Positions 3,301 through 64,000 are shown, counted from the first letter of the stretch. The stretch: DNA of 64,000 bases from Lytechinus pictus (GCF_037042905.1 NC_087247.1:13144001-13208000); one strand, 5' to 3'. Numbers and translations: made by a program. Notes: a model not told the origin generated them from the letters alone.

Positions 3301-4824
3301 CAGTTAGTTTTGGACAAAAATATTTTTAAACGGTAATAGGATGCAGAATGCTTTTGAAAATCCACATTTAAATGTTTGTGCCTGCCACTTTTGAAAAGAA
3401 ATATAGGATAATGCGTGGGTTTCTTATAGGTGAAATTTCATAAATAATAATAAAGTTTGTTTAAATGAGTTTTTAATTTCTTTTTTTTTAAGATGTACAT
3501 TCAATTCAATTCAAAATTTATTTCAATCAATCAATCATAAAAATACAGGTATATACAAATTAGATAAAAACATGGGATTGGGAGCCCCTGGAAGTTTTCA
3601 TTAAAAAAAAACTTGTGGGTGGGGCACCACCATGATACAATTAAATACAAATAACTATAAGACATACATAAAGAGTGAACAACAAATAACATTGAAATAC
3701 AATTATAAAAAAAGAGAGAAAAAAGAAACAATGGCTAATATAGGGGAAATAAACAAACAAGCAAATTAGAAGTAATAATTATAAATCATAGTGACCTACA
3801 GTGTGCTATTGGTAGGAGTTTTTATGCTGAGAGAAAAATTGAACTTTCAAAAGTTTTTTAAACTTATTTAGGGCTTTACTTTGTTTAATATCATTATTTA
3901 AATCATTCCAGAGCTTGATTCCGCTACAACGTAGAGAATTTTGGGTAATTTTTGTTTTTGGAAGATATTGGTGAAGATCTGCTAAATGACGCGTAAAATA
4001 TGAATGGTAAGAGGCATTTGTGTTGAAGAGATTATTAAAAATATTTGGCAAGAGATTTGAATGGTAATTGTACATAAATATATAAGTATACATAAGAGCC
4101 AAGTCACAAATTTTCAATATTTTATAATCAAGAAATAACTTGTTTGTGTGACTATTGAAGTGTGTATTACAAACTGTTCTTATTAACCTTTTTTGAATAA
4201 GAAATAATCTATGTAAATGTGTTTTGAATCCATTCCCCCATAACATACAGCAATAAGTGAGATGGGGTAAAACCAAAGTATTATAAAGTGAAATTAATAC
4301 ATGTCTGGGTAAAATAAACTTCAGTTTGTTGAGGACACCAGTACTTTTTGATAAACGAGTGCATAAATCATCAATATGAGGTTTCCAGGATAGAAATTCA
4401 TTTATCTTGATACCTAAAAAATTGATATTTGATACCTGGGAAATAATATTGCCATCCATAATAACTGGAGGAATGTCAGTACCAATTTTTTTAGTTTGTG
4501 TTTTAAATAGTACAAATTTAGTTTTTTCAAGGTTCAGTGACAGTTTATTGCATTGAAGCCAGACGACGACTTCACGAAGTTCAATATTTATGGTGTTAAT
4601 AATATTTTTTTGAGAAAGAGTAATACTGGTATCATCACCAAAGAGTATGAAATTAAGAATTGAGGAACAATTTACAAGGTCATTGATATACAAACATATC
4701 TTACATACATATATGTAAGACCAAAAAAGATGATGAATAAGAGAAAGAATAGAGAAATAGGGGAGAGAGTGGGAGAGAATAAGAACAAAGGAAAGACAAG
4801 AGGCAGAAAGAGGAGAAGAATATT

Positions 4825-34097: not shown

Positions 34098-34360
34098 NNN
34101 NNNNNNNNNNNNNNNNNNNNNNNNNNNNNNNNNNNNNNNNNNNNNNNNNNNNNNNNNNNNNNNNNNNNNNNNNNNNNNNNNNNNNNNNNNNNNNNNNNNN
34201 NNNNNNNNNNNNNNNNNNNNNNNNNNNNNNNNNNNNNNNNNNNNNNNNNNNNNNNNNNNNNNNNNNNNNNNNNNNNNNNNNNNNNNNNNNNNNNNNNNNN
34301 NNNNNNNNNNNNNNNNNNNNNNNNNNNNNNNNNNNNNNNNNNNNNNNNNNNNNNNNNNNN
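34098..34360. other. Assembly gap (further gaps at 34979-35111 and 51707-51916)
   Basis: Runs of N. Confidence 0.99.
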
Positions 34361-43400: not shown

Positions 43401-44590
43401 TTATCGGCAACTCCACACCGGGCCTCCACATTGATCCCCTTCAGATTGAGATTAACGCCATCTACGTTGGGATGAAGTCAGGGTCGATGTAATCATTTTC
43501 ACTATGAAGAGCCAGCTTCGCTGATTGGTTGAAAGTTTGACAACTGATCAAACACGATACGGCATTGTATTTTCCATGAAATCAAATGGATGAAGTAAAG
43601 CCGCAGTGACTTTTATTCTAGCAATTAAATGCCGATTTTCATTCACATTTGTGCAATATAATTTTGGAAAGAAAGCAAATTAAACCTTTTGGATGAATTT
43701 CATTTACTATAAAAATTGTGGGCGCATTTTCACTTCCATGGCAAAAAAGAGTGATTACTTTTCCTTGCTCGCTTTGTTCGCTCATTAACAAGATGCATCA
43801 CAATTTCGGAAGCAAGCCAATTAACAATTGTATTATAGGAGGTATGCTTTTATTATATGTAACACTTCCAAAAACAAGATTATATAGTTATAAGCAAGAA
43901 AATTTAGCTATTTAGATCAATACGTCTAATAAAAAATGCATCCACTTGTTTTTTTTAGGACGAAATAAAATAATGAAATCCAAACGCCAATCTCAGACGT
44001 CAGATACTGGAAGGAATGGAAATCTCCTTGAGTTTGCAATAATTTGGTGACAAAATGGGCCAATTGAAAATGGGATGACCAACATTTTGAAGCTGTGTTT
44101 TTTGTTCTTCTTCTTCAGATCAATGGCGGCTGAACCTAAATGAAGTTATTGATCAAACAGGCGAGTTCTGAGATACTCCGTCAAAACAAAGTCAATCAAT
44201 GACTTCTTTAAAAATCTGAACTGACAAGATGACTCAGTTTGGAGCATGGCCCAACAACTCAACAGGGACCTCCAAAGACGGATCCGTTACAACCGACCAC
44301 TGTTGGGTTGGCAAACCCTTTTTTACTCCTATAATTTACTTCTAACGTCACAGGGTGGGGCCTTCGCCTGAAAGGATGACGGGTATTATTTTTTTTCTCA
44401 CCAGCTGACTAGTAGAACAAACAAGGATGACTTTTGACATTAAGATAAGCCAAGTTCGCAACCACTTTGTAATAATCCAATATGTCTGGAAGTCCTAACA
44501 TGGGATGGATGAGAAGGGCGAGTGTGGAAATGAATCCCCATTGTCCGCCAAAACAATGCTTCCTGTCACGTTGAAGCCTCCGAGATTTGT

Positions 44591-44872
44591 GATTGGTCAA
44601 ATGTTCGGGTGACGTCACTCCCCCCGCTGCGGATTCGACACCATGGTCTTGAAATGACCTTCGTGATGTAAATATTAGCTTGGCAAAAGATGCAATAGAG
44701 GTATATTTGCATCACAAATATTCCTTGTAGCTCAGCGGAGATTGGATGCCGATTAGTAAATCTGGAAGCTTGAGAAAACGATCTTCATTATTTTATCAGC
44801 TGTCGTCAACAGCAGGTCAAACTTTGAAGGATAAAAATCAAGTTTTTACTTCTTGATCCAGCCACCAACAAG
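44591..44872 (+). promoter_or_regulatory. Putative promoter module (reverse CCAAT + CRE) and non-coding first exon of secreted protein A
   Basis: GATTGG at 44591, TGACGTCA at 44610-44617, strong donor AAG|GTAAGA at 44872/44873; the ATG of gene A directly follows an acceptor, so an upstream exon is required. Confidence 0.5.
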
Positions 44873-45751
44873 GTAAGAAAGTTTTTTGTTGGGTGTGTGT
44901 GTAATTATTTTATATTTATGATTTTATTAGAAATCATCAAGAATCACACAATATCTACAATAGATTGACATGATAACAATGTAAAAAACATATTTAAAAA
45001 ATTAAAGTTGTATTCATTTAGAGACATTATAATTCTAAGAATTCTCACTAATGATGGGTAATTTCCTGTTAGATTCCATCTCAAGTTTCTCATTTCAGTT
45101 TTTTTTTCTCGACCGGGAACTCAAAATAGTTCACCAACTCGACTTGAATATGAATCTCAATTCATTAAGATGAGGAAACCTTTATTACGTGCCCTCAGGT
45201 TTGAGAGCTAACCTTCAATATCAGTTTCACTCTTTCACCTGCATTTTCTTCTTTATATTTCGTTGATTTATGCTAATCGAATTTGTTTTCCTTTTTAAAA
45301 TTATCATTTGAAATTAATCAAGTGTAGATTGCATGAATCGTTGTTTTATTTATCATACATTATTTTCAATCATATTTTTAGAGTAATAATTGTTTTCATT
45401 GGAGAGTGAATACTGCTAGTATACAGTATGTATAAAACGTGTGTGTGAAACGCTGTTAAAAAAATGTGTTTCCAAAAATAGATAATTGTTATATACTGAT
45501 AGATTCTCTACACTCTTTTGCTGGAATGGACAATGAAATGGGAAAACAAATTATTTTCTCTTTGCCTTCATTTATGATTATCGTTTTTATTATGTGTCAT
45601 TTCATTATCATGATCGTAATATCATGTTTGTCTTGTGCTTAATTGGCTGCGGATTATTGGTATGTATTCGCTCTCAATAGGGGGGTTGCAATAGCTACGT
45701 ATATAGACGCTTTCTGGAACGTAGAAAATCTATTGTCGAATGCTCTTCATG

Positions 45752-45903
45752 ACAATGGAGTCTTTGTCGAGGATTGGTGAATCGAAACAGCAGTTTCGTC
45801 CTGGACTCCGGACAAGCGACAGATTTGCGATTATTCGTCAGCTCTGAATCGTCGGATGAAAATGCTGTTCCGATTCACCGAATCTCGACAAAGACTTCAT
45901 TGT
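45752..45903. repeat. About 150-bp imperfect palindrome
   Basis: acaatggagtctttgtcgaggattggtgaatcgaaacagcagtttcgtcc / ggatgaaaatgctgttccgattcaccgaatctcgacaaagacttcattgt. Confidence 0.8.
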
Positions 45904-46954
45904 GATTTGTCTTGCATCTTACACGCATCGGCTGCGTTGTAGGATCCATTGCGCGTGGGTGAGCGAAAACTCGCTAGTATCTTGTAGGGCATAAATGATA
46001 CGTATTTCTAATGAAAGTCTTTCTCTGAGTATACCTGAAAGCCAAAGGCAGAGATGAATAAAATAATATTCAGAACAAACTAACTACATCAACCATGCCT
46101 AAAACCAGCATTAAAGAGAAGACTTTACTTATTGAACGGAATTGACAAATAAATCAAAATTAATATAATACATGCCAAGAACAATATGTAATGATGTAGA
46201 GTACTCAATTACAGACTGCTGCTTTCATTGTACTATATTCCTTTATTTTGTCGCAATCCATTTTGACACCTTAATATAAAATAGGTAAAAAATCGCTTAC
46301 GAATGAACCAAAATCGTCTCTTTGCTGCCATTCTGATAAGGGGTATTTTACAACCTCTATCAATATTTACTTTGCTTTGATTTACTTTGTAATTTTGTTG
46401 AATTTTTTTAAATGAAATATATTCGTTAACAAATCAATCAATATTAGAATATATCCTAATACAGAAATTAGACAACTTTTTCAAAATGTAACATTGTTTA
46501 TAAACATCATGCATATTTCATATAAATCATATGATGCTGTATACACTGTAGTTCGAAAAAATTATAAATTTTTATGTATAGTATCCTCCCGTGTTTTGGC
46601 ATGAATATATTCATAGATGATATCCACGCACCCCGGGTGGAATGCACATTAAGTTAAGTATAACAATGATTGTTCACAAATTATTTCCTATTTATTTCGT
46701 GACCGTTTGTCATCTGGTTTTGGATACTGACAAAAAACGTGAGTTGGGGGATTTAAAGAAGTCTACTTCTCTTCCAGGGTTCATTTACAACAACACAGAT
46801 TATTTTCTTTGTTTGTGCGATTTAACACTTTAATTATGTAAATAGAGAGCTTTCTCGTTCACAAACTTTTTGAGTGTGATTTGGGTTTGTTTGTTGGTGG
46901 AATACAATAGAGTATGTATTCTTCATAATGTGTGTAATACTTTACACACATTAA

Positions 46955-47549
46955 TAGGAGAATGAAACCTTTGGAACAAGATAGCTTGTGTGAAAACAGA
47001 AAAATCAAAGAAACAAATCAAAGAAAGTTTGAGAAAAATCGGAGAAATAATGAGAAAGTTATGAGCATTTGAATATTGCGATCACTAATGCTATGGAGAT
47101 CCTCATATTGGCAATGCGACAAAGATGTGTGATGTCACTTGTCTTGTGAACAACTCTCCCCATTACTTTAAAATATATTTCACTTAAACTGCCTCTTTTA
47201 TCACATCTATCAGTAGATCATGTGTTCTTTCTATAGTAATACAGATTTTTAAAGAATGATTTTTAAAGAATACATCATGGATAAAGATTTTGTATCACCA
47301 TAAGAAAAAGCAAAAAGAGGCATTTTGGGGGTATTTTATAGTCCATCAAAGGGAAAGTTGTTCACATGTGACATTACACATCCTTGTCGCATTGCCAATG
47401 AAGGATCTCTATGGCATTAGTGACTACAATATTCAAATGCTCATAACTTTCTCGTTATTTGTCCGATTTTTCTCAAACTTTCTTTGTTCTTATTCTTTGA
47501 TTTTTGTGTTTCGACACAAGCCTACTTGTTCCAAAGGTTTCGTTCCCCT
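46955..47549. mobile_element. Kolobok-like MITE with long TIRs and TTAA TSD
   Basis: TTAA flanks at 46951-46954 and 47550-47553; arms complementary for about 200 bp. Confidence 0.8.
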
Positions 47550-48984
47550 TTAAACAAACAAACAAAAAACGTTTCCGGGTCTTTCATTTATTAATTTATT
47601 AATTTTATTTTTGAGGGCTAGATGCAGAGTAAAGCGACCTCTCAAGTTTGTAGCATTACCTTCAGTAAAAAAAAAATCAATAGCTGTAGGTAATAGTATG
47701 ATACCATAATTTATTATAATAACTCTATATGATCATGATTCATGATGATACATAACAAAGCGCCGTAGAGTATTAAGGCCTTCACATATACCCATATGGT
47801 TGCTTTTCTTGTTTCTACCACAAAAAAATGCAATTGTCGTTGCCATTGTCGTAATAATCATTGTTTTTATCACTATTGCACATCTCAGTAGTTTCTTAAC
47901 TTTTCTCCACACCTCAACTCCATCCTCTTCTCCCTCGTCCCTTCCCTCCTTCACCCTCCTCTTCCTCCCAAGTCGTTCATCTCACCTTTCTTCTTTATCT
48001 TCCTAGCTCTTCTTCTTCTCCTTTTCCTCATCCTCCTCCTTGCTCTTCTTCTTCATCTTTTTTCTTCTTCTTCTTCTTCTTCTTCTTGTTCTCTATCTCC
48101 CCCTGCTTCTCCTTTTCCTCTTCATGAATCTCCCCATCTTTTCATATATGGATATCATTTTTACATCTTTTGTCATGCCCCAGTCACACCAACATCACCG
48201 ACTCCAAACCGAACGATGGTATTTCATTGAAAATAACGTAATAGTTTTGATCGGTCTGGGATCTATTTCGTCGGTGTGACAGCGGCATCATCATAATTCA
48301 AATAAAAACAAATCATCAAAATATTCATTGCAACAGCATCAATAAAGATAATAAATGATAGTTCAAGTGAACTCAAAATTTCTTCATGACCCGTAGCTCG
48401 CTAAGGGCAATTAAAGTAGGTTGCATAGTCTAGCATTCTACATTTGTAATTATCTTGATGAACTTGAAGATATGAACCCCGTCCAATTCAAAGTTAAACT
48501 TGAGCGACCTGGCCTTGGTCCAAACGTTGTGCGGATGGAAAGTAACTTCCTATTCAACATGGCTTGCCAGCTGTCTGCAGGCACGTATATCTGAGGACAT
48601 GTCTTGGGTCTTTCCTTTCCACAAGTTTCAAAAATAAAATAACAAGAAAGGTCGCGAACAGTGTGGGAACTGAATTGGGTTCAAACCCGAGTTCACGTTT
48701 ATTTTCCTATTAAGAAAAAAACAATATTCATCTAAAACTTACACATTAAAAACAAAAAATACATTTGTTAAGAAGTGGTAAAATGAAGCCTCCTCACTGG
48801 TTCATTCTTCACAATGGAGACCTTCAGAGGTGTTATGATGGTTTAATTTGTTTTTATGTTACTTTATTCAAATGAGTTATTGCTTGATTGAACTTACCTC
48901 TTAAGAAGTAGTTGATTTCCCCCTTTGATAAAACACATCGATGTAAATATATAATTTATCAAAATTAATGTTGTTTTTCCACAG

Positions 48985-51066
48985 ATGAAACTGTCCCTTG
49001 TCTGGTGTTTGATGGCGGTCCTAGTGGCTGTTGTAGCAGGTAAATATGTTCATTCTTATTGTTATGTCCAACTTCTGAAAATCCATGATTTAATCAATAA
49101 AACCGATCTTAAAATCCAGTTAAAGGTTTAATTATATTGTAAGTTTCCTTCCAATCTTTCCACTATTGGGGAAGATGAAAGATATATCTCCAATCATCCC
49201 CTACTGGAAAGAACACAGTGTGTGCCACAGTGTGTTCACAGTGTGAAACACAATGCGAAATCCCCCTCACACTGATGGTCGTCCATGTGAACACGCTGTG
49301 AACATTACTGTCGAGGTGTCCACGGTGTTAAAATATCTACACACTGTGGAATTTGAGCATTTCTACAGTGTGAATAATTCAGAATAAATATCATTTTCAC
49401 ATAGTCCACTATGTGAACACACTATGATCACACCGTGTGACACTGTTCTTTCCAACAAGGTTGGCACCAAGCCGTTCCATTATACAAGGTGTCCACTGCC
49501 GAACTGACCAATTGTCGAACCGATGATTCCTGACCAAAATATTTTGGGCCTGGTCAGTCTGGCTTCAATTGGTATCCAATGCAAATTCATCGGCGTCTGT
49601 CTATCTTGATCGACGTCGCTCTGGTTACCATATTGATAATAGGCATGGTAAAGATCAAGCCAGAGTGTTATGTTTGCCCCCAACGTAGGAACAGATTGAC
49701 CCTGTTTACCTTGTCGAGCTAGATCGATCAGGCTTGATCAAGTTGATCGGTTCTGCAGATACCCAATGGATTAATGTTATGTTCCCATATAGCTGAACTA
49801 GCGTACGCGACCAAAATGTTTTAGGTCAGGTGTCTGTAATTTGGCAAGCTAATCGGGGCAGTCTAAAACTTGATCGGCTGATCAACAACGCCCTTAGTTG
49901 GCTTTCTATTTTGGCCAACTTCAGAATATTGGAGTAGGTGACCAGATTGATATGGACCAACGTAGATTTACATCGAACATAGTTGATTAATTTCGATTTC
50001 CTTGCCAAGCTACTTCGACCAGGCCGAAATTATCTTGATCGGGCGTGATCGAGTGTGCCGGTTCGGTAGTTTGAACCTGGTATAACTTTAACTTTGATCA
50101 GACAAAAGTTCTAACATCTTTTGTGACCTTCTACCGGAGGACATCAGAACCATGCCAGCAATATCAAAGTTCTCATTAGCATATGGTACCACTAATCAAT
50201 CCTTTATCAATCCTTAATCAGTGCGCTATTGTAAAGATTTTCTTTTCCGTCTTTCTCAAGGGCAAAATGGTCAGAGACAGTATCAACCTTACTGGCAGCA
50301 ATACTATCAGCAGTATCCACGGCAACAGCAACATCCACCAAACTACGATCCCAGGTATAACCAGCAACCATGGTATCCAAACACACAAGGAACATGGGCA
50401 ATGGACCCAGAGGAACAACGCGAGCAACAAGAGAATATGATGGAAAACCAACGAGAGCGACAAGAGAATATGATGGAAAATCGACGGGAGATGCAGGAAA
50501 ACATGATGGAGCGACAGGAAAATGCCTATGAGAACGGCCAGCGGTGGCCTCAGGGACCCAGGCAACAACAACCTTGGGGACAACAACCAAGACAGCAACA
50601 ACCTTGGCAGCAACAGCCATGGCAGCGACAACAATGGCAACAAGGGCAGGGGCAGCGGCAGCCATATTATAACCAACAGCGAGAAGGCTGGGGCCAGCCG
50701 TACAACCAGCAGCCATGGGGACAACCCTATAGAGCCCAACCCCAGAGACAGCCAGCTTGGTGGAACCAACATGTATGGCCTCAACAGGGTTACCTGCCCC
50801 AAAGACAGACTGGGTTGGCTCCTAACGACCCAGAGGCACAAGAAAACATGATGGAAGAACAGCAGGAAATGCAGGAAAACGCCATGGAAGCACAAGAAGA
50901 GCAGCAGGAAAACGCCATGGAATTGGCAGAAGAAAGACAAGAGCAAGCGCGCGAACTCCAGGAGAACGCGCGGGAAAATGGAGCTCCAGTGAACTGGAAC
51001 CGCAATCGCCGCGGGCGGCAACCAATCTCCCAGCAACGTCGACCAGCTCAGCGATTCAATCCATGA
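48985..51066 (+). CDS. Secreted Gln/Trp/Pro-rich protein A with two acidic 11-mer repeat modules (286 aa)
   Basis: Exon 48985-49039 encodes signal peptide MKLSLVWCLMAVLVAVVAG (phase 1) and joins 50261-51066 (GQNGQRQYQPYWQQ...QRFNP*); canonical splice sites; long GC-richer open frame. Confidence 0.88.
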
Positions 51067-51529
51067 GATTAATAGAGGAGATAAATCAAATTCTGAAATA
51101 ATGTAGAAATTATACCCCTTTCTGTTTTTGTTTTGTCTTATTTTTCTCTTCTTTCCTTTTCGTATATCCCTGAAAATGTGTATTTTATTCAAGAAGGAAA
51201 CTACAAGTGAATCTAAAAATCGTAAAACACAGTTTGGGGTATAGCTGAAGTGTGATTGATACACTAATTATCATCCCGTGAAATTCATTTGTCAAAAATC
51301 CCTTTCTGAATTTACCAAAAATCCAAATATGATTATCAACTGAATATTTCCGAGATGGGGGTGACATATATTTTCTCTGATATTTTCAATAAAAACACCA
51401 ACTGAAAAATTAGTACATTGTAGTGTTGGTAATATTTTATTGGATTAAAAAATAAGAATGATGATGATGGAGGCTGCATATCAAGAGAAAAGTGGGCAAC
51501 TGGTTGTCGGTCGATTTAAAAAATACTTG

Positions 51530-52170
51530 ATTGGTTGGTTGATTGATTGAGTGATTGTTCGATTGAGTGAATGATTTAGTGAATGAACGGTTGGTTGACA
51601 TGGTTGAGTGAGTGAGTGGGTGAGTGAGAGAATGAATGAGTGGGTGGGTGAGTGATTGTGGGTATGGTGAGTCTGGGTATGAGTGAGTGGGTAAGTAGTA
51701 AGAGAANNNNNNNNNNNNNNNNNNNNNNNNNNNNNNNNNNNNNNNNNNNNNNNNNNNNNNNNNNNNNNNNNNNNNNNNNNNNNNNNNNNNNNNNNNNNNN
51801 NNNNNNNNNNNNNNNNNNNNNNNNNNNNNNNNNNNNNNNNNNNNNNNNNNNNNNNNNNNNNNNNNNNNNNNNNNNNNNNNNNNNNNNNNNNNNNNNNNNN
51901 NNNNNNNNNNNNNNNNGTGAGTCTGGGTATGAGTGAGTGGGTAAGTAGTAAGAGAATGGGTGAGAAAGTATGTGAGTGAGTGAGTGAGAGAGTGATGGAT
52001 TGATTGATTGATTGATCGAGTGAGTGAGAGACTGATTGTTTGAGTAAATGATTAAGTGAGTGAGGTGAGTGAATGGTTGAGTGAGTGAGAATGGATGAGT
52101 GAGTGGAAGAGAGAATGGATGAGTGGGTGAGATAATATGCGAATGATTGATTGAGTTTATGAGTGGTTGG
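51530..52170. repeat. (GAGT/GATT)n compound microsatellite spanning a gap
   Basis: Direct inspection. Confidence 0.85.
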
Positions 52171-53781
52171 CTGACATATCGGTTCCATACACCAATACAA
52201 ATTTCCTGTAATTTTAAATGATGTAATGTAAGATTACGCAATATGGTAAGATTACAGGTGTTCTCGAGACTCTGCTGCAGGAACTTTTATTTTAAGGATA
52301 AATTTTCTAACAGTGTAGTTACATGGTGAATGAGAAAAGATTGATAGAAGAGTGATTGAACACATGATCGCTAGTTAAATGACACAATTTTCAAGTTGTG
52401 ATTGGCAATTTGGCATAAATGCCTATCAAGAGAATAAAATTATTGAAACCGTACAGCAAGTTGATCAGTAGATCAACATATCATTTACATTATTGAGTTA
52501 TGAATTAAATTTTTCTTGACTTCATAATAGTTTCACAACTGAAATAATTTCATCATCATCATGTTTATTATCATGACCCCTACCAATTACGTGGCAAGTA
52601 TAAGGCCCGCTAGTCATAAACTTTAAAGTTTCGCTAGTCATAAAGCGAAAAATGGTCACTACTTATAAAAATCATTATGACCATTATTCATACGATCTGC
52701 TACTCATAATATAAAATGAGGGTCGTCATTCATAATCCACCATGAGGGTAATTAATCGTAACAAAGCCAATTGGGTTCTTATTCATAAAATTGAAGGAGG
52801 GTTTCTGTACACGGAGGGTCACAAATTATAATCAAAAGGACCACCATCAATAATCAATCGTATTCATAATACCAGATGAGTGTCTCTAATCATAATCCAC
52901 AAAGAGGATCGCTACACTGTAAACAAATTTGTTGGGTGAAATTTTAACCATCAAGATGGTAATTATGTGTCCAACCAATTTGGAGCAGTATTTTACCCAA
53001 TGCGGGAAGCATAATGTCCAGTAAGGTTAAAAAATAAGCAGCAATTACTTTAGAATGGCCAGAATTTTCATCACATTGGATAAAGAAAAATGCCCAAAAG
53101 AAATGCCAAGTGTTGGTTGGACACTTAATTACCCTCATGAAGCACTTTTACCCAATATTTGTTTAGAGTGTAATCATTTATCGAAGAAAATGTACTCTAT
53201 TCTCATTTGGAGAAAATATCGCTAGTCATAATCCAGGAGGTCGTTAGTCATAAAGCGAGAAGGAGCTCGCTAGCCTGATCTATTCAATTATGGCTAACAC
53301 GGCTGGCGACCATTTTCTTTTTCGTGATTATAAGCTATATACCCTTTCTACCCGATAGCAATCCTCTTCTTTGAATATGAATAACGACCATTATGAATAT
53401 TGAGCCTTCATTTCTGTTATGACTAGCGATCCTTGTGAATAATATAAAGTCATAATGACGAGCAGGTGGATCGACGTCCCAATCACAATATACGAGCCTA
53501 GGGTACATAGGGGCGAGAGAACAAACAGGCCCCGATGTGACGTCATTTTATTGCGCAAAGGAATAGTCGAGCTATTATAGGGTTACACCTATATACCTCT
53601 CTCTTTTTTTTTTCTCTCTCTCTCTCTCTCTCTGTCATTTCTACCTCTTATTTTTTTCTTTTCATTTTTTCACTACTTGAAAATCACAGGGGACATTGAA
53701 TTTTCTCCCTCTTTTCATTCTTCATGTAGAAAGAATGTCGTCACTTTATCACTCTCTTAGTCTTTGCTTAATTCATTTTAA

Positions 53782-54384
53782 AGGTCAAGTCCACCCCAGA
53801 AAAAATGTTGATTTGAATAAATAGAAAAAAATCATACAAGCCATAATACTGAAAATTTGATCAAAATCGTATGTAAAATAAGAACGTTATGACTTTTTAA
53901 AGTTTCGCGTATTTCTCACAAAACAGTTATATTCACAACTGAGTGGCATGCAAATGAGAGAGTCGATGATGTCCATCACTAACTATTTTTTGTTTTTAAT
54001 TATTTGAATTATACAATATTTTAATTTTTACCAATTTGACATCACGGACCAACTTAGCTAAACCATAAAATGTTATAACAACGGCAATGACATCACATGT
54101 TCAGGGAGGAATAAAACTTTGTTTCACAGGACAATGAGGGGAAAATTATAATATTTTATATTTCATATAATAAAATACAAAAGAAATAGTGAGTGATGTC
54201 ATCAGTCCCCTCATTTGCATACCGACCAGGATGTGCATAATACTGTTTTGTGAAATTAAGCGAAACTTTAAAATGTCATAGCTTTCTTATTCTACATCCA
54301 TTCTTGATGAAATTTTCATTGTTATGCTTGTTGGATTTTTTCTGTTTATTCAAATCAATTTACTACTTGGGGTGGACTTGTCCT
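53782..54384. mobile_element. Kolobok-like MITE (TTAA TSD)
   Basis: TTAA|AGGTCAAGTCCACCCCA ... TGGGGTGGACTTGTCCT|TTAA. Confidence 0.8.
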
Positions 54385-54683
54385 TTAATTAACAATAGAA
54401 TAATTCTGTATACCTCGGTCACATTTGCTCTACGGCGAAAACAACCGTTTTAACCTTTTTTTTTAAATAACTAGATATAGGTGGTTCGAATAAAAATTAA
54501 TGTTAAACACGGATGTTTTCGACTCGGCGTACGGCCGCCATAGGCATGACAGGGCAAATGTTGACTGAGATAATAATGGACCTAAAAATTTGTTCGCTCA
54601 TTACTCTACTGAAAGGTTTGATCTGTCTGGAGAAGGTTTCGTTAGTGGGACTTCAACATGCCTCTAACTCTGATGAAAGTTAA

Positions 54684-55271
54684 AAGACAAGTCCACCCCA
54701 ACAAAAAGTTGATATAATAAAATAGGTAAAATCTAACACCTAAATATAGCAATGAAAATTTCATCAATATCAGATGTAAGAATAAGAAAGTTAAAGTTTC
54801 GCTTAATTTCACAAAGCAGTTATATTCACATCCTGGTCGGTATGCAAATGAAGGGACTGATGACATCGAACACCCACTATTTTTTTTTTGTATTTTATTA
54901 TATCAAACATGAAATATTTCAATTTTCTCCTCATTGTCAAGTGAAACAAAGTTATATTCCTCCCTGAACATATTGAATTCGCCTTTATTTAGAAATTGGG
55001 TGGTCTAGTCAAGTTGGTCCTAATTGTCAAATCTTTTAAAATTGAAACATTGTATAATTCAGACAATAAAAAAAAATAGCGAGCGAGGGACCTCGTCGAC
55101 TCTCTGATAAAGACTGGATAATTGTTCTGTGAAAAACAAGCGAAACTTAAAAATTTCATAACTTTCTTATTTTACATTCAATTTTGATGAAATTGTGAGC
55201 ATTATCCTATTCCTTGTTTGATTTTTATATAATGAGTCAAATCAGCATTGTTTCTGGGGTGAACTTGGCCT
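54684..55271. mobile_element. Kolobok-like MITE, same family as 53782-54384, opposite orientation
   Basis: TTAA|AAGACAAGTCCACCCCA ... GGGGTGAACTTGGCCT|TTAA. Confidence 0.78.
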
Positions 55272-55434
55272 TTAAAGAACTCGCTCGATTAATTTCAAAT
55301 CTCATAATTTATTATTATTATTATTATCAGATTAAAAACAAGTGCACGAGTTGGTATCAATTAATGCATGAAGAATTTTCGTTTATTTGATGAAATTAGA
55401 TAACAGACATGAAAGAGCAAAGGAGATAAAGTTT

Positions 55435-55519
55435 GCCTTGGTCAAGGGTCATGCGGGAATCGAACCCCGGACTTCCATGGTGTAGTAGGGAGCCATAGAC
55501 CACTCGGCCACGGCACCTC
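55435..55519 (-). mobile_element. tRNA-derived SINE head
   Basis: Reverse complement GAGGTGCCGTGGCCGAGTGGTC...GGTTCGATTCCC; no paired acceptor stem. Confidence 0.65.
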
Positions 55520-56691
55520 AACATTGTGATTCCATGCCGATCAAATAGCTTTTATTCAACATCCTCAAGATTCGGAACATTTGGGTTGACTCTGTCATTT
55601 GGCGTGACTGCCACATAAATGTCTTGAAAAGTCTGAGAGCATTACCATTATCAATTTATCAATTAATGACCATTTTCACAAAATCATGCTCTTGGCGTGA
55701 TTGTAGTCCTACTTTTTGAAAGGTCAATACTGAGCTGACGAAGGATAGCAAGAGTCGAGGAATAGGCCTATATTCTTTAAATCTTAAAGAAAAAAAAGAG
55801 CCGAACTTTGTCCCACATCATCCTCCCCAATCATGGGATATCTGGGTGAGGGCATCATCCCCGGAGGAAAAGATGAACATCCTCGCGGGGATGACTGTCC
55901 ATTCGTCACCATGGCAACCATTCCACGTCGCGATACTTTCCGTTCAATATTCTTTTGAAAGATGATTTTGACGCAACCTTCAAAGTTTTTATCCTGTACG
56001 AAGGAGAGGAAATCTGATCTTATCAAAACATGATATAGATTTGAAGGGCACATCAACATCTTACTTATAGGTTTATCTCGACCTAAACTAAAGGGAATAG
56101 GTTAACTCAACATCTTATACTTCGTAAAAAAAATCACGAAGTGAAACCTTTAGAGGCTTGGGGTTCAACCCTTTTTATATTGTTTGAATTTAGGTTTTCC
56201 TGCCAATGATGTATGTTTATGAAAAATGAATTGCCCTACTCTATTCTGTCAGAACCTTATTTTTCCTCTTCTTTTTCACTAAAAAAATATGAAATACAGT
56301 GATTGTATACTTCGACTTGAAATTGAATGTGAAAATTTAGCCACTATGTTGAGATAATAAGGAATGTATGTGTCCCTATATGCTCTCATTCCCATTTCAT
56401 GTTCGGTATTTAATTACCTTTTTCTCAGTTGTATCAACAAAAATGCCACTGTCAATGACAACTCTGCTACAAGAACTCCCATATCAGCTGAAAGGGCTGA
56501 TATTTTGTATTTTAAGTAGAGGTGAGGCAAATTGCCAGTCGATTAGACTTTGCCAATAAGAGAATTATGTAAGCTTCAAACGTCAAGAAAACTCACGAAA
56601 TTCTCTTTCTCGCCAAGAAATGAGAAGAACTTCTCCTTCGATCCAAAATGAAACCGTGCTCTTCGCACGTATACCCTCTATCGTGTTTACC

Positions 56692-57260
56692 ATTGGCTAA
56701 AATTTAATCTATGACATCACAATGATGGCTTCCTGTTTTAGAGGTATTTTTTTTTAGTTTTACCTCAATGTGGAAATCGATTTTATTTCATATCAAATCA
56801 AAAAAAAAATTATAAGGATGTGACGATAACGCTAGAATTTACAGATGTAGACCTTCTATGCGTCTAGCATGTTCTCATTGGTGTTTGTTTATTTTTGTGT
56901 CAATAACCTCGTGATATCATACTGCCCCTTTTCACTATTAAGTTGATTTAATTCTTTGTTGCACTAAGCATCTGGAACACGTGAGTGTTATCCAGGCACT
57001 TTTTTGTTTGGGTGTTTTTCTTTATCGGTGTCTTCTTTCTCCTGTCCTGGGACTGAAGTTAAGGTCCACTACTACTAGGAATTTAAATAGGAAAGGTGAA
57101 AAGTCAAATGCTTTCTCCCCTTCCCCATAAATAGGAGCAGATACCAGTCAAGAGAACATTTTGAAGAGAGTTTTCATCTCGGAGTGAATTTGTTTCGTTC
57201 ATTCTGCCTCTTCTTTCTTGTTACCATCTCAACCTGTAACACCATCATCATCATCATCAA
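56692..57260 (+). promoter_or_regulatory. Putative promoter (CCAAT + CRE-like, TATA-like CATAAATA) and non-coding first exon of secreted protein B
   Basis: ATTGG at 56692, TGACATCA at 56712, CATAAATA at 57126, donor AAA|GTAAGC at 57260/57261. Confidence 0.5.
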
Positions 57261-58420
57261 AGTAAGCATTTCTTCCTTGATATTTGTTCTTCGTATACCG
57301 CAATTAATTATTTCATCTTTTCAAATTTGCATCTAGTTCGTAAGATATTTAATCGGTTGTTTTTGCTAGTATTTTTTTTAAATCGCTTTCACTATTTGAT
57401 AAAAATGATTTTTACAATTACCATGCATGATTATCATCCTTGCACATCTAATCACGACATTGTGCTTATGTGTAGGTGTGAAATGTGTTGTGTGTGCGCG
57501 CGTGAGTATGCGTGCGCGCACGAGGGTGAGTTTGTGCGAGCGACTTATATGCATAGAGATGTACAATATTAATGCATCTTTATGCTTGACAGGGAACAAT
57601 TTTTGCAAGTCATTGTGGACTAAATATAACATTGGTCCTTGCATGCTACTTACGAGTCCCTTATTCACTGGGTTTAGTATTACATTTGAAATTGCTTCTG
57701 TAAATAAATTTTTTTTTTTTAATACATGGAAGATAATTTTCTTAAATACATCTCTCCAATGGCGCTCTTTGTTATATAATAATTGCAACAACTATGACGC
57801 TCTTCGATGAACCCTCTTTTTGCAAATCAAAATCACCATCAACTGTCATGACTGTTGACTCTTCAAAACAAGCGAAACACTATATACGTACTTGATACTT
57901 CCTTCTTTCTTTCTTCATCATGTGCTTTTGAAGAATTTATTCCAATAAACATAAGTTATTGTTCTTTAAAATGTTTGACTGGTTGTAGTTTGCAACCATT
58001 TGACTGTTTCGTAAAACACAAACAAGTTTTTATAATCCGAAAATTATTTTAGTAAAGGTGGTTACCTGAGTAACAGACATCGGTGCTTCTCGACCATTCA
58101 AAGCCAAAGAAAGTTGTCAGATTCGACAACTTGGGAGATGGTTCATCAATTGTCGCCCTAAACTGTCTGGTCTGAAAACTTTCCTTGCGTCTACTTACCC
58201 TCTTGCTGAATTTTAATCTTTATTTTTTTTAAAATTTCTTGGCGGTGTAAATGTGTTGCTATATTTGTTAAAATCAATGACCTAATGCGGCTATTTTTCC
58301 AGATAAAATGAAAATAATTACAGTAATTGTGCAACGTACTTTAATTTTGTGCCGTGATACATTGCAATACAACAACCTGTCATGCATGGTAAAGGCACGC
58401 GTTTACTTTTCTTATTTCAG

Positions 58421-61400
58421 ATGAAGTCAACCATCTTGCTAGGTTCATTTGTACTCTGTGTTCTCTATCTAGAAGGTAAGCAAATCCACAATCTTGAAAA
58501 TTTTAGAAACTTTCTTTGTCCTGTATTTGGAACCTTTTAAAATTCTACAAAGAAGTAGAAAGGAGTTCTGAACAGTCCTTTAAAAATGTTCTACAAGGGA
58601 CCTTTTAAGGTTCCTTGTAAGACTGGTTTAAGACGGGTCATGTGATCCAGTGGTTAGAGCATTGGACTCATAATCGCAAGGTTGTGAGTTCGAATCCCAA
58701 CTCGGCTATTGTCTCCACTTTAATAAAAAAGGCATGAGAGTGATATATGTTGTCTATAACGTCAGCCACTATGACTGATTAACAATCTAGACGTAAAATG
58801 TTTCATAGGTAATTGGTTATATGCCAGCTTGGCGTTTACCAGCAAAACGCTGTCCTGCCGAGTTCCTACGGGAGTTACCATAAACAGAAACAGAATGTAC
58901 TTTATGGTGTGGTTCTTGATGAGGTTGTTGTATATATACTTTTAATTCATATGTTTCTTTTTATATTCTTATACTAACCTGGATGGAGGTAAAGGGGTGT
59001 GGGAAGGAAGACCTGTGGGTCATGGTAATTTAGTTAACCTTTTCCAAACCCAGGCAGCCCCTTCATCTCTATTCCAGGTCCTTTGTACTATGACAATGTC
59101 ACGTATGTCCTATTGTTTATGTAATTTGGATTGTACTATAATTTATGTATTTTGAAATGCCGAATAAATAATAATAATAATAATTTAAAAAAAGATTGTA
59201 TAGAGAACTCTGTAGGAAATTACTATGGTTCTTCACACCATCAAGAACCCATATCCTCAAAGGGTTCCTTTAGTAGAACCAAAAGCGGTTCCTTAAAAAA
59301 AACTGTTCAAAACCCTTTTCTGCGTCTTTGAAAAACCTAAAAATAATGAGTTTTCGCATTTGCAACGGGGAAGGATTCTAGGACATTATGTATGCATTGA
59401 AAATGCCCGTATAATCAAGGAAAGTGATATCCCATTAGTATAATCGCATCAGCCTTTTCTAAGAGTGCAAGATTAATAAGAAGACATGTTGTATTGATTA
59501 GCACTGAAATCATATTTTTAATGTTATTCATGTTGTCAATGTTTATATTATGCCGTCGTTATTCAAGAGTTTATTAAATAAAGGATTTTTAATACTTCTG
59601 AAATTCCCAACATCGACATTTTCTTGAATTATTAAGGTAATAAACATAAGAATATAATAACTGTGTGATAGTGTTGAGAACACATGGTCGTTCTGTTAGT
59701 AATGTAATCAACGTTGTTATCATGCATTTTATAGCATCGAGTCCTACCTGATAGATGGCTGGGATATTAATTTTCGTTAGATTGATGAATAAAATATATA
59801 TTGAATTCAAATATTACAAATATAAGGTTTAGACTATGAAAATACATTGGAAAGATAGCACATAAAATAGAGATGGATTATGGTGTCCTTAAAGGGATGG
59901 TCCAGGCTGAAGATATTTGTATCTCAATGAATAGAGTAAAATTCACAAAGCAAAATACTGAAAATTTGATCAAAATCGGATAACAAATAACGAAGTTATT
60001 GAATTTTTAAGAATTGAATTATTGTGGTGAAACAGTTCTAGGCATGTTTTCATGAATATTCATTAGGTGGGCTGATGATGTCTTATTCCCACTTGTTCTT
60101 TTATATTTTACTATATGAAATTAGTGTTATTCAACATTTTTCTACCAATAACTAAAACATTGGATTGACAACTGATTAAGTGCATTAGTAATTTATTGCC
60201 GCAACTTATTTCATCCGCATGAAGACATATTATTTACACATGTATGAAAAAATGAAACAATTATGATTTCATGTTATAACATAAGAAAAAGGAAAGTGGG
60301 GATATGATATCATCAGCCCACCTAATTAATATACATGTCGATGTGCATATAACGGTTTTCACAAAATATTGATAAAGTTTAAAATTGAATAACTTCGTTA
60401 TTTGTTATCCGATTTTGTTAAAATTTTCAGCAGTTTGCTTCGTAAATTTTACTCTATTTATTTAGATATAAATATTTTCAGCCCGGACCATCCCTTTAAT
60501 GATGGCTGGAACTTCTCTGGTTGGTTGATTGGAAGAATATTGTTTGGTTTTATATATTGGGCTGCTGTTATTAGTTAGTTCATTAGTAGTCACCTGATTT
60601 ATTTTGTTTTTTTCAGTAAGTCATATTAGTCGTTTAGCTTCATGTTCGTCAGGGCACATTGCAGAGGTGGTGATAAGGGGGGAGAGTGTGACCCCCATCC
60701 CAATACTGTGATTGTTATCATCTAATCAACAGACCAATTAACCCATCAACGTATCAACCAACTAACTAATTAGCCAACCAAGAATAAACGATCAGCCAAT
60801 TTTCAACGTAAATTATTTATTGCCGACAAAAATTTTATCTACTGGAAATGAAATTAAGTGGCTATTCGTTCGGTGGTGAATTTTTTAAATATCAGGGGTT
60901 TTATGTCAACCTTTAGTTATCGAATGCAAAATAATTTACATGCGTTCTTTGACTTCCTAAACAATTCGTGGTCTTCAATCTTCAACCTTTAGGGCAGTGT
61001 GCACCAGCCGGTCGGAAACTGCTGCAATGGCAACCCCAATGGCGTCAGGGGTACAATCAGTGGAACCAGCAATGGTACCAACAACAGCCACAGGCCCAGC
61101 GTCAGCAAACCCAGTGGATGCTAGATCCCGAGGAACGATTCGAACAGCAGGAAGAGGTGCTGGAGAATCAGCAGGAGCTTCGTGAGGATGCCTTTGAGAA
61201 CCAGCGAGGCCCTCTACGGCAGACAGCTAACGGACAGTTGGTCTACAACTCACAATCTCGCGAGGTCGTTGTCGGTGCTGCTGGAAACGCTCCTGCCCCT
61301 TACATTGCGCCAGGAGGATCAACCTTCTCCTCAGAAGATTACGGTTCCTATGTCCTCTCAACAATTCAACCAAATGCTTATTACAGAAATGGTTATCAAC

Positions 61401-61426
61401 CTTGGAATCCAAACCAGTGGGACTAA
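58421..61426 (+). CDS. Secreted Gln/Trp-rich protein B, paralog of A (162 aa)
   Basis: Exon 58421-58475 MKSTILLGSFVLCVLYLEG (55 nt, phase 1) joins 60993-61426 (GQCAPAGRKLLQWQPQW...WMLDPEERFEQQEEVLENQQELREDAFENQR...WD*); AATAAA at 61429. Confidence 0.85.
58635..58900 (+). mobile_element. tRNA-derived SINE (tRNA-Met-like head)
   Basis: GGGTCATGTGATCCAGTGGTTAGAGCATTGGACTCATAATCGCAAGGTTGTGAGTTCGAATCCC; acceptor stem unpaired and the sequence continues into a SINE body. Confidence 0.7.
59893..60495. mobile_element. Kolobok-like MITE (TTAA TSD); relatives at 62810-63372 and partial at about 32675-33030
   Basis: TTAA|AGGGATGGTCCAGGCTGAA ... TTCAGCCCGGACCATCCCT|TTAA; arms of about 120 bp. Confidence 0.82.
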
Positions 61427-61529
61427 GCAATAAACATACTTCATTTACTTCCAGAATCTATTCCATGATCATTCTAATTTCCCCCCACCTTTACCAGAAT
61501 TTTAAATAATTTGTTTGTATAATAGTAGA

Positions 61530-61568
61530 TGGTAGTAGTGGTATCAGATGTAGTAGTAGTAGAAGTAA

Positions 61569-61660
<92 letters not shown>
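61530..61660. repeat. (GTA)n microsatellite
   Basis: About 30 perfect units plus degenerate flanks. Confidence 0.95.
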
Positions 61661-62809
61661 ACTGGTAATTGTAGGGTTAGTGGTCTTTGGGTAGTGCTAG
61701 AATTTGTTTTAAAAAAAGAAACAACTGTAACACCCAAACATTCTACATACATGATTTAATTATTAATGATTCATTACTGAAATAAATTAATTCGAACAAA
61801 ATATTATAATTGCTTTCTCGTTATCATTACGATGTATACATTTTGTAAAACATATTCATCATGTTGTTGTTTACATTTATAACATTAATATGTTAAGTGT
61901 ATGAAATAATTTTATTTCAGTCTATTATCTTCTTGGAAAACGGATGATAATTTGTCTAATTTCGCAATGTATTTAGTCATTCATCATGTTCGTTCGGGTC
62001 GGGTGGTTTTACGACGATTCATTTTGAACGAAATCCAACCACTGGATTGCCTCGTTAATGATTATCTTGTCCGGCTTGGCACTTCTTCACTTGGTTCCAA
62101 ATATTTTACTAATTGTGCCATTTTTTTAGGAGTGTGAACAAAATAAAATAAAAAATAAATATTGAATTGCAAGTGCGTGTTAGGCAAAGCGAACTCAACC
62201 ATTACCTACTGTATATAAAAAGCCACCTCTGGTCATGTTCTTCAATATCGAGAGAGAGAGAGAGGGGGAGAGAGGGAGAAAAGGGTCAAGATATAACGCT
62301 GACATAATTTCATTTCTCAATTGGAACAGAGGAGAAATATAGAGTTACGTGACCAAGATCTCTCTCTCTCTTTATACTCTCCTTTCTTCTTCATTTTATT
62401 CCGCCCTTTTCCTCTTTTCCCCCCTCCTCATTTACTCACTACTTAAAAATTATACTGGGTGGTCGGATTGGTGCCCCCCTCCCTCCCATGTAGTGCAGCA
62501 CCTCGCCGATCTGTGTGAGCGGATAACTAAAAAAGATATTGTTACAACAAAAATCAACTCTCGAATAGGAGAGAGAAAATTGTTTAAAAATGCAAATGAT
62601 AGAGATGAATCATGGTATCGTATCTTTGAGCGATTAAAGTCAAGGACCAGGTACAAATCAAGTTTACCATCAATACAAACTAGTTCAATGTCAATAGTTT
62701 GTTGAAAGGTATTGATTAAGCAGGCCTATGTTGAAGTTCGAATTATTGTGCTATCTTCTATCGACCGTTTTTTTACTTCTGGAAGTAAGAAGACCACAAA
62801 GTGATTTAA

Positions 62810-63372
62810 AGGGGTACTCCAGGCTAAGTAAAATACTATGGTTTAAATAGATAAAGTAAAATCAGACAAACACAACACTGAAAGTTTCATCAAAATCGAA
62901 GAAGGAATAACAAAGTTATATAAGTTTAAAGTTTTGCATTATATCGGTGAAACAGCTCTGTGCTTTGCGTTATGAATATGCAATGAGCGAGCTGATGATG
63001 TCATATCCCAATTTGTTTGTACTTTATTGTATATTTATTCGAAGAAATTCCCCAAGAATGTGAAAATAAGGTCGACTAGTGACTAGATAACCATTGCTGC
63101 AACATTCAATTACTAGGGAGACATGATGTACACAAATGTATAAAAAGTACCCCAAAAGTACAAAATAATCGTGATTTTATGTAATCTAGTGAGAAAAGGG
63201 TAATGACATCATCAGTGCACCAATTTTATGACGTCATACATTACCTTTTCTGCAAAATATTGTCAAACTTTAAAATTCAATAACTTCTTAATTTTTAATC
63301 ACATTTGGATGAATTTCTCAGCATTTAATCTATTTATTTTGACATTTATTCTTTCCAGCCTTGAGTACTCCT
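62810..63372. mobile_element. Kolobok-like MITE (TTAA TSD)
   Basis: TTAA|AGGGGTACTCCAGGCT ... AGCCTTGAGTACTCCT|TTAA. Confidence 0.78.
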
Positions 63373-63571
63373 TTAAAGCAATATTTCAGTGTTTTGAAAG
63401 TTTTCAAACTCTTTAAGCTTCAAGTCGTCTTTCCGGCGTGAGAAAATTCAAAAGCGGAAGATCTCATTGCTAAAGGAAATGAAGAGAGACAGATACTTCA
63501 TATTTTTTGTGTCCCGATGATATGATACAAATCGATCATCACCTTTCACCCCCGTTAGCTTCTAGCCATGC

Positions 63572-63821
63572 GATTGGTGGAGATAACGGTGACGTCACTT
63601 GCTCCACAATGGCTCTGTTAAGAATTTCCATTCGGTTTCATGGTTCTATAAGATTTCTTATGAGGTTCAAAGAAAGGTCTGTTTCAACGTGATTTTTTTT
63701 TAAATAAATACGGAGTTTTCGTTTGATATAATTTACTTGGACAAACTGCTGCAACTGATTTGTTCAGTGATTCATCTTTCTTCATTTGGTCTTTCTTGAA
63801 TAACACGCAGTCATTATCAAG
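63572..63821 (+). promoter_or_regulatory. Candidate promoter and non-coding first exon of a further gene
   Basis: GATTGG at 63572, TGACGTCA at 63590, TAAATA at about 63701, donor AAG|GTAAAT at 63821/63822; same layout as upstream of gene A. Confidence 0.4.
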
Positions 63822-64000
63822 GTAAATATGCTGCTCGCTATGATACGACTGCTTGCATCTTTTGTTATTTAGATTTTATCTATTAATGTTTCATTATTGT
63901 AATTAATTAGAGCATTCCCATGCTCACACTACGACTCTTTCGTGTGAATGTACGACATGTGTTGCAAGAGTGATTCAAAATATAACGCAAATTCTCACAG

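Follow-up and report, generated by a model that had tools for sequence, protein, structure and literature searches.

A conserved tandem cluster of three sea urchin genes encoding predicted secreted proteins with alternating glutamine-rich tracts and acidic helices

A stretch of 64,000 nucleotides (nt) from the genome of Lytechinus pictus (GCF_037042905.1, NC_087247.1:13144001-13208000; hereafter the window, with positions counted from its first letter) was analysed with regard to two genes, A and B, which lie between positions 48,985 and 61,426 and had been put forward from the sequence as a tandem family of uncharacterised secreted proteins. They are the first two members of a sea urchin cluster of three tandem genes which is conserved, and of which the third, gene C, lies past the end of the window. 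This third paralogue and the order A-B-C, which is kept in other sea urchins, strengthen the claim of a tandem family. The positions of the mapped and predicted features are collected in Table 1.

Results

Gene A and its transcript

The transcript evidence for gene A comes from the assembled contigs of four sequencing runs (X10, X2, X4, and X1). The 49039/50261 join is contained in a 1416-nt X10 contig from the same species, with zero mismatches, and in a 1268-nt X2 contig from a sister species; a spliced transcript, the lack of which had been named beforehand as a reason to give up the original prediction, was therefore found. The unique part of the intron has a depth of 0 in all four runs whilst the exons are covered, which indicates that the contigs are derived from RNA, and gene A is thus a transcribed, spliced gene. 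Within the same intron, the repeat at 49176-49457 has a contig depth in the hundreds in all four runs and in both species, with many rearranged joints.

The letters of the X2 contig which precede 48983 match 44847-44870 exactly, with 0 chance matches expected, thus placing the end of a 5' untranslated region (UTR) exon at 44872 and making the position of the ATG directly after the acceptor a true exon boundary in gene A. This ATG, at 48985, lies immediately 3' of ‘ccacag’. The 5' limit of the transcript lies upstream of 44798, and the X10 contig holds 374 nt ahead of the ATG exon. When the sequence is read by eye, an in-frame TGA is seen at 44825-44827 and no ATG follows, so that 48985 is the first in-frame start of the gene. 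No similarity was found between the promoter and 5'UTR of gene A and the regions upstream of B or C.

Gene B

The original prediction had described the same plan for both genes, that is, an ATG right after a splice acceptor (‘tttcag’ in B), a 55-nt signal-peptide exon with a phase-1 Gly junction, and a next exon starting with Gly-Gln (GG CAA in A and GG CAG in B), and all of this was borne out. The predicted product of gene B is 162 amino acids (aa) in length and is, letter for letter, RefSeq XP_054750684.2 of L. pictus. The phase-1 Gly-Gln acceptor is also kept in a Strongylocentrotus-type genomic contig; an exact look-up of L. pictus B in the assembled runs, for the splice, has none on record, and the join of the two B exons is predicted.

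The orthologue of B in Lytechinus variegatus (XP_041461095.1) is 96% identical over the full protein; for that of Strongylocentrotus purpuratus (XP_011683765.1, 161 aa) the identity is 72% for the whole protein and 75% when the mature region alone is compared.

Gene C and conservation of the cluster

Composition and signal-exon scans of the flanking DNA led to a third paralogue, gene C, located 6.5 kb downstream of B at G000:C3:13211994-13214699 (L004:3994-6699). A colinear alignment of C with B takes in the last part of the acidic block together with a GP..QTA.G motif (expect value, E = 3e-4), and WNPNQW is common to C and the C-terminus of B. No clear Asp-Pro-Glu (DPE) cap is seen in C, although it aligns with B over the acidic block, and its repeat regions are rearranged between genera. 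When the micro-exon is included, the S. purpuratus C protein agrees exactly with the annotated 201 aa.

The same-strand order A-B-C is kept in L. variegatus (286, 162, and 226 aa) and in S. purpuratus (291, 161, and 201 aa). All three genes have a common plan in which the ATG lies 0-1 nt past a predicted acceptor, followed by a 55-nt phase-1 signal exon and one large mature exon, to which C adds its micro-exon. A start codon in such a position implies an upstream 5'UTR exon, mapped for A only. A scan for ‘AG, 0-3 nt, ATG, 51 nt, G/GT’ with a hydrophobic translation gave exactly three exons, those of A, B, and C, in approximately 320 kb. No fourth paralogue was found within -120 to +140 kb by the composition and signal-exon scans. 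A weak match on contig 17 was considered as a further paralogue and rejected, as it is a 15-nt simple repeat.

A homologous block shared by A and B had been claimed, and it stands: the W(A/M)(M/L)DPEE...EN block has 17/31 identities (E = 4e-8, composition-adjusted), and a profile of it, run against the 812-Mb genome, matches only A (twice) and B.

Table 1. Features of the A-B-C cluster; positions are those of the window, except for gene C (L004).
Feature	Position	Strand	Description	Basis or remark
Gene A 5'UTR exon, 3' end	44798..44872	+	Donor AG/gtaaga at 44872/44873	X2 contig match
Gene A signal-peptide exon	48985..49039	+	55 nt, phase 1 (MKLSLVWCLMAVLVAVVA + G; G/gtaaat)	Splice to 50261 in X10 and X2 contigs
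Gene A intron	49040..50260	+	GT..AG, 1221 nt; high-copy repeat at ~49176-49457	Contig joint 49037->50259 (cut +2); depth 0 in unique part
Gene A main coding exon	50261..51066	+	GG CAA = Gly-Gln junction, 267-aa mature region, stop	Contigs of X10, X2, X4, and X1
A module 1	50395..50544	+	Trp-x-x-Asp-Pro-Glu-Glu cap, ~four 11-residue repeats (ENQRERQENMM type), charge -8	Predicted helix, mature residues 49-90
A module 2	50815..50988	+	Asp-Pro-Glu-Ala cap, ~four to five 11-residue repeats (QENAMExxEEx type), charge -15	Predicted helix, residues 190-238
Gene A 3'UTR	51067..51402	+	AATAAA at 51388-51393	Contig ends at 51392 (X1) and 51402 (X4)
Assembly gap	51707..51916	.	In intergenic (TGAG)n/(TTGA)n microsatellite	Outside mapped exons and frames of A and B
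Gene B signal-peptide exon	58421..58475	+	55 nt, phase 1 (MKSTILLGSFVLCVLYLE + G), ATG right after ‘tttcag’	Counterpart exon in L. variegatus and S. purpuratus
Gene B main coding exon	60993..61426	+	GG CAG = Gly-Gln junction, 143-aa mature region, stop	RefSeq identity
B module	61115..61210	+	WMLDPEERFEQQEEVLENQQELREDAFENQRG	Near-invariant Lytechinus-Strongylocentrotus; profile E = 7e-16
Gene C signal exon	L004:3994-4048		55 nt, phase 1 (MKSLLAVCVVVALVAGIE + G)	
Gene C micro-exon	L004:4994-5005		12 nt (CTCGACCGCGCG, Ala-Arg-Pro-Arg)	Kept in L. variegatus and S. purpuratus
Gene C large exon	L004:6044-6699		Ten WNPNQ repeats, then long Gln/Glu/Met acidic block (QEMQEQ)	

Architecture of the proteins

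The leaders, as read by eye, are MK + LSLVWCLMAVLVAVVA + G in A, MK + STILLGSFVLCVLYLE + G in B, and MK + SLLAVCVVVALVAGIEA in C, and on the same reading the classical features of a signal peptide are found in all three, namely a basic n-region, a hydrophobic core of at least 12 residues and small residues at -3/-1, with no other membrane segment and no anchor. Protein A is 286 aa in length and opens with a hydrophobic leader of 18 residues, after which come a Gly whose codon is split by the phase-1 junction and a Gln. Its mature region of 267 residues is composed of 26% Gln, 12% Glu, 10.5% Arg, 10.5% Pro, and 9% Asn, with Trp, Tyr, and Met at 5% each and with 0 Cys and 0 Lys, just as the original prediction had said of these last two.

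Protein A is an internal duplication in which a Gln/Tyr/Trp tract, a DPEE helix, a Gln/Trp/Pro tract, a DPEA helix, and an Arg-rich tail follow one another, with net charges by block of +2/-8/+8/-15/+7; the corresponding charges in B are +4, -9, and 0, and the net charge of C is -44. Arg clusters lie near the C-terminus of A (RNRRGRQP and QQRRP). The acidic modules, which had been suggested to form helices, are predicted helices with an 11-residue periodicity. In an AlphaFold2 model of mature A, built with no alignment, there are two long helices at 49-90 and 190-238 (predicted local distance difference test scores, pLDDT, of 84-92) and the remainder is disordered, whilst in B a helix at 64-88 is given with low confidence only. 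Identity at a lag of 11 residues is 0.64 in module 1 and 0.59 in module 2, with other lags at or below 0.42, and the 11/3 periodicity of hydrophobic residues was equalled in a fraction of 0.017 of shuffles for helix 1 and in 0/5000 for helix 2. The repeats can also be seen in the DNA as 33-nt tandem repeats at 50416-50510 (module 1) and 50851-50922 (module 2). Asp-Pro-Glu(-Glu) is a classic helix N-cap, and the A helices begin directly after Asp-Pro-Glu. Module 2 matches the profile with E = 3.9e-8, and among the X2-contig differences listed, which form a partial list, only synonymous changes fall within it. When helix 2 of A was predicted as a homodimer, the score was 0.01 (mark, 0.32), which is neither support nor counter-evidence.

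Selection and composition

The ratio of nonsynonymous to synonymous substitutions (dN/dS), calculated by the Nei-Gojobori method, was 0.14 for A and 0.19 for B between L. pictus and L. variegatus. For the more distant comparison of L. pictus with S. purpuratus it was 0.12 for B, at a dS of 1.37, and likewise 0.12 for the C-terminal 93 codons of A. Between the two Lytechinus species, A has 94% amino-acid identity with no indel in 267 codons. A and B are protein-coding genes under clear purifying selection.

The Gln codons are divided almost evenly between CAA and CAG (36:34), and such mixed use implies that the Gln tracts are not triplet-repeat expansions. Among the 1,460 residues of eight mature sequences there are 2 Lys and 2 Cys, against 112 Arg. 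Lys is nearly absent even though 148/267 codons of A are one substitution away from it, which argues for selection against this residue. As a consequence, the mature proteins could only take part in transglutaminase cross-linking by donating Gln to the Lys of another protein.

Searches for relatives and database names

No Pfam domain was found at threshold in A, B, C, or their S. purpuratus orthologues, in agreement with the earlier remark that no known domain could be recognised; the sub-threshold matches (CortBP2, FAM222A, and ATAD3_N) are coiled-coil or low-complexity noise. A sequence search of the PDB returned only a de novo designed helix (E = 0.19), and a feature search of the ESM Atlas with A and B gave no usable match. 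A match to a characterised family had been named beforehand as another possible refutation, and none was found in Pfam, the PDB or the literature. With A as a query nothing was retrieved by a word-indexed search of 5.8 billion proteins or by an exhaustive HMMER search of 1.84 billion representatives, and likewise nothing with C. However, the annotations of L. variegatus and S. purpuratus do hold A- and C-type genes of the right length (286/291 and 226/201 aa), and as the protein searches missed these, their blanks are unreliable for such low-complexity queries and say nothing on relatives outside camarodont sea urchins. The search with B retrieved no protein from outside sea urchins. It is well supported, at the level of sequence, that these proteins form an orphan family which is predicted to be secreted and mostly disordered and is known so far from sea urchins only (Lytechinus and Strongylocentrotus).

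Two database names require comment. Med26 is a nuclear protein with a TFIIS-type N-terminal domain and no signal peptide. The S. purpuratus B protein, entered as a putative ‘mediator of RNA polymerase II transcription subunit 26’ (XP_011683765.1), has no Med26/TFIIS domain by Pfam and has a hydrophobic signal sequence at its start, and the name is not supported. Both this name and ‘antigen LPMC-61-like’, under which Lytechinus B is found and which refers to an antigen of the apicomplexan Eimeria, look like artefacts of composition.

The assembly gap and other sequences around the genes

The assembly gap lies 641 nt past the A stop and approximately 300 nt past both the AATAAA (51388) and the last transcript contig (51402); the ATG exon of B follows 6.5 kb further on. 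The gap is flanked by two identical 40-nt sequences (51667-51706 on the left and 51917-51956 on the right), and the contig ends may thus overlap at this join, within the repeat, in a way that the assembly left unresolved. The mapped exons and frames of A and B, including the mapped 5'UTR exon of A, are independent of the gap. The (TGAG)n/(TTGA)n microsatellite in which it sits (51481-52241) is also present between the S. purpuratus orthologues (L034:1223-1402 and 3583-3762), with the same spurious minus-strand ‘LTHSLNQSINQS’ open reading frames (ORFs), and its position seems to be conserved across genera. Two more runs of N are found in the window, at 34098-34360 and 34979-35111.

Around gene B, an AATAAA is found at 61429-61434, 3 nt past the stop, and the 3'UTR may be very short unless the signal at 61781 is used. 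Some 100 nt past the stop (61523-61660) there is a (TAG)n microsatellite of approximately 46 copies with poly-Val and poly-Thr pseudo-ORFs. Part of the B intron (58640-58712) has, by eye, a look of being derived from transfer RNA (tRNA), with GGTTCGAATCC-like and TGGTTAGAGC-like box motifs, and is possibly the head of a short interspersed nuclear element; ARAGORN calls no tRNA there, nor anywhere in 44000-64000. Upstream of B, the non-coding blocks 55631-56112, 56496-56564, 56627-56723, and 56945-57231 have 69-80% identity to the region upstream of S. purpuratus B despite a dS above 1, and are candidates for a B 5'UTR exon, a promoter, enhancers or, for the first block, a shared repeat.

Discussion

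Composition of the kind found here, in which Arg and Tyr/Trp ‘stickers’ are set in Gln-rich spacers and Lys is disfavoured, is the composition that drives the condensation of disordered proteins. The products are made up of basic Gln/Trp/Tyr/Pro/Arg-rich tracts which alternate with strongly acidic, Asp-Pro-Glu-capped predicted alpha-helices of 11-residue repeats. Under the mode of action proposed here, the proteins, once outside the cell, would self-associate or co-associate by contacts of Arg with aromatic residues, and of aromatic residues with one another, within the Gln-rich tracts, and a second contact would be provided by the electrostatic pairing of the basic tracts with the rigid polyanionic helices. 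They would then behave as condensing block polyampholytes, coacervating alone or with their paralogues, to form or condition an extracellular material, and roles as enzymes, receptors or peptide-hormone precursors would be disfavoured. That A, B, and C are self-associating extracellular block polyampholytes of this type, acting via Arg/aromatic contacts and charge blocks, is in our judgement the most likely of the explanations considered, with a somewhat less than even chance of being correct.

The original prediction had gone as far as an extracellular material system, an idea which is plausible as a hypothesis, and the interpretation is partly supported. A fuller version of it must be put more tentatively. 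According to this version, the cluster would encode block polyampholytes which are secreted, lack Lys and Cys, and make up an echinoid family not described before. Their Arg/Trp/Tyr/Gln tracts and DPE-capped Glu/Gln/Met hendecad helices would drive condensation into, or control of, a material specific to sea urchins, be it a skeleton-associated matrix, an adhesive, a coat or mutable connective tissue. In that case, the helix with its DPE cap and hendecads would be a new module, and the paralogues, with charges of approximately -6, -5, and -44, would make up a tunable coacervate system. We consider this possible but on balance doubtful.

Several observations weigh against the condensation of block polyampholytes. 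The hydrophobic stripe of the helices is narrow, being formed of Met and Ala. No paper on the accessions or the RefSeq names was found, and searches for Gln-rich sea urchin proteins gave unrelated proteins only. The export of the three products is predicted from signal-peptide features read by eye. Lastly, the acidic helix of B with its flanks, and the C-terminal PNAYYRNGYQPWNPN.WD, are near-invariant between genera at a dS of approximately 1.4, and such residue-by-residue conservation fits a specific binding partner better than it does generic condensation.

It is this last point which gives most weight to another explanation, in which the proteins would be secreted to act on a specific partner as ligands or adaptors, for example as a component of a gamete coat, the hyaline layer, the gut lumen or the coelomic fluid, the helix and the C-terminal motif of B serving to dock and the low-complexity tracts serving as spacers. 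The conservation at the level of residues between Lytechinus and Strongylocentrotus, which extends to the B helix, GPLRQTANGQ.V.NSQSREV, and PNAYYRNGYQPWNPN, the dN/dS of 0.12 and the absence of indels in A between the two Lytechinus species are all to be expected of such a ligand. However, the repeats of C are rearranged between genera, which is a better fit to a role that depends on bulk properties than to a lock-and-key interaction, and we regard a specific ligand as rather unlikely.

A role as cargo of the regulated secretory pathway appears less probable again. The proteins could be packed into granules in the manner of granins, or be precursors from which Trp/Arg-rich peptides, bioactive or antimicrobial, are cut whilst the acidic helices act as neutralising pro-pieces, and the signal peptide, the acidic Glu/Gln segments, the Arg clusters near the C-terminus of A, and an N-terminal Gln able to cyclise would suit either possibility; the alternation of anionic and cationic blocks also resembles the design of antimicrobial pro-peptides. 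In a neuropeptide or prohormone precursor, short peptides which are themselves conserved are flanked by conserved mono- or dibasic cleavage sites, and a Gly that signals amidation is often present. In this family no dibasic site that could be cleaved is conserved; in L. variegatus and S. purpuratus, Pro comes directly after the Arg pairs of A (RGRRP and RRRP), and the GRK of Lytechinus B is GRN in S. purpuratus. Furthermore, the peak of conservation is in the acidic helices and not in the basic tracts, and the cationic density is low, at +8 in 95 residues.

The skeletal biomineral matrix is an obvious alternative in a sea urchin, and a form of the material idea which is somewhat disfavoured here; its probability is put slightly below that of secretory cargo. 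The proteins would be produced by skeletogenic cells and be occluded in, or line, the calcite, with the helices binding Ca2+ or mineral and the Gln/Pro/Trp tracts assembling in the way of SM50-type repeats or amelogenin. Like A, B, and C, the spicule-matrix (SM) proteins of the SM50/SM30 type are secreted echinoid proteins, often encoded in tandem, with low-complexity Pro/Asn/Gln-rich short repeats. Pro-X-Y repeats rich in Asn and Gln are described in the literature as frequent among sea urchin matrix proteins, with which the ten WNPNQ repeats of C and the gene structure of a signal exon plus a mature exon would agree. An alternation of basic with acidic blocks of low complexity has also been described for tooth matrix proteins, which are likewise secreted (Mann et al., 2008; PMC2614417). 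On the other hand, a C-type lectin-like domain is mandatory for SM proteins (PMC2614417) and none is found by Pfam in A, B, or C, and acidic hendecad helices and Trp-rich tracts are foreign to the SM proteins. The blocks of the tooth proteins are of Ala/Pro/Val/Arg and Asp/Glu/Gly, as opposed to Gln/Trp/Tyr/Arg tracts and Glu/Gln/Met helices, several of them have a Kazal domain, and there is no sequence relation. The acidic blocks of A, B, and C are Glu/Gln/Met helices and not tracts of Asp or phospho-Ser, and A is almost without Asp, Ser, and Thr there. In addition, of six tryptic peptides to be expected from A and B of S. purpuratus, none was found in the supplements of the spicule (including the peptide table), tooth, and test/spine proteome papers, a weak negative since the older Glean3 gene models searched in those studies may lack the genes.

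Likeness to other systems is perhaps best understood as a likeness of design. Amelogenin is a small, secreted, disordered protein which lacks Cys and runs from a Tyr-rich N-terminus through a core rich in Pro and Gln to a charged tail; it self-assembles and guides mineral. The Tyr-rich start and Gln/Pro/Trp core of A recall it in composition only, there being no match to the Pfam Amelogenin family even at E <= 1, and amelogenin has no long acidic helices. The Sp185/333 (SpTransformer) genes are clustered echinoid genes with a leader and one mature exon, flanked by microsatellites, and their products are secreted, Cys-free, disordered, and repeat-bearing. They differ in their Gly- and His-rich regions and RGD, which are absent in A, B, and C (His 0-2 per protein; RGD not visible in the sequences), and in being a hypervariable multigene family whose members are highly diverse mosaics of ‘elements’, as against three single-copy orthologues under purifying selection which are 94-95% identical between Lytechinus species. 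Trichohyalin and involucrin carry a high charge, are rich in Gln, Glu, and Arg, and have short tandem repeats of which long predicted helices are built; transglutaminase may use them as Gln donors. Unlike A, B, and C, which are predicted to be secreted and are nearly free of Lys, they are intracellular epidermal proteins without a signal peptide and contain Lys, with an S100 domain in trichohyalin. Finally, the hendecad (11/3) periodicity of long helices in A is shared with the exchangeable apolipoproteins, the group-3 late embryogenesis abundant (LEA) proteins, and alpha-synuclein, but the hydrophobic face in A is very narrow (Met/Ala), its polar face is strongly anionic, and there is no sequence similarity. 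All of these, the SM50-type and tooth-matrix proteins included, would therefore seem to be analogues by design only, as each fails at least one defining feature.

The weakest alternative, that of chance ORFs in low-complexity DNA or of non-functional transcripts, might draw on the extreme composition, the long ORFs which also occur on the opposite strand, and the failure to retrieve A and C from the protein databases, but it is effectively refuted by the GT..AG spliced A transcript in two species, by dN/dS values of 0.12-0.19 with dS of up to 1.4, by the conservation of exon phases, micro-exon, and gene order in three species, and by the mixed CAA/CAG use (36:34) without a pure triplet repeat.

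As it stands, the work is useful for annotation and as a lead, and is not yet a discovery about biology: misleading database names are corrected and three genes are shown to belong to one conserved cluster. If A, B, and C do prove to be condensing block polyampholytes, the cluster would offer a compact and genetically tractable case of extracellular protein condensation, based on three small genes in L. pictus, a species in which stable mutant lines are possible. The sequence rules to be followed in such a system would be unusually clean, with charge blocks, Arg nearly without Lys, Trp/Tyr stickers, and rigid polyanionic helices.

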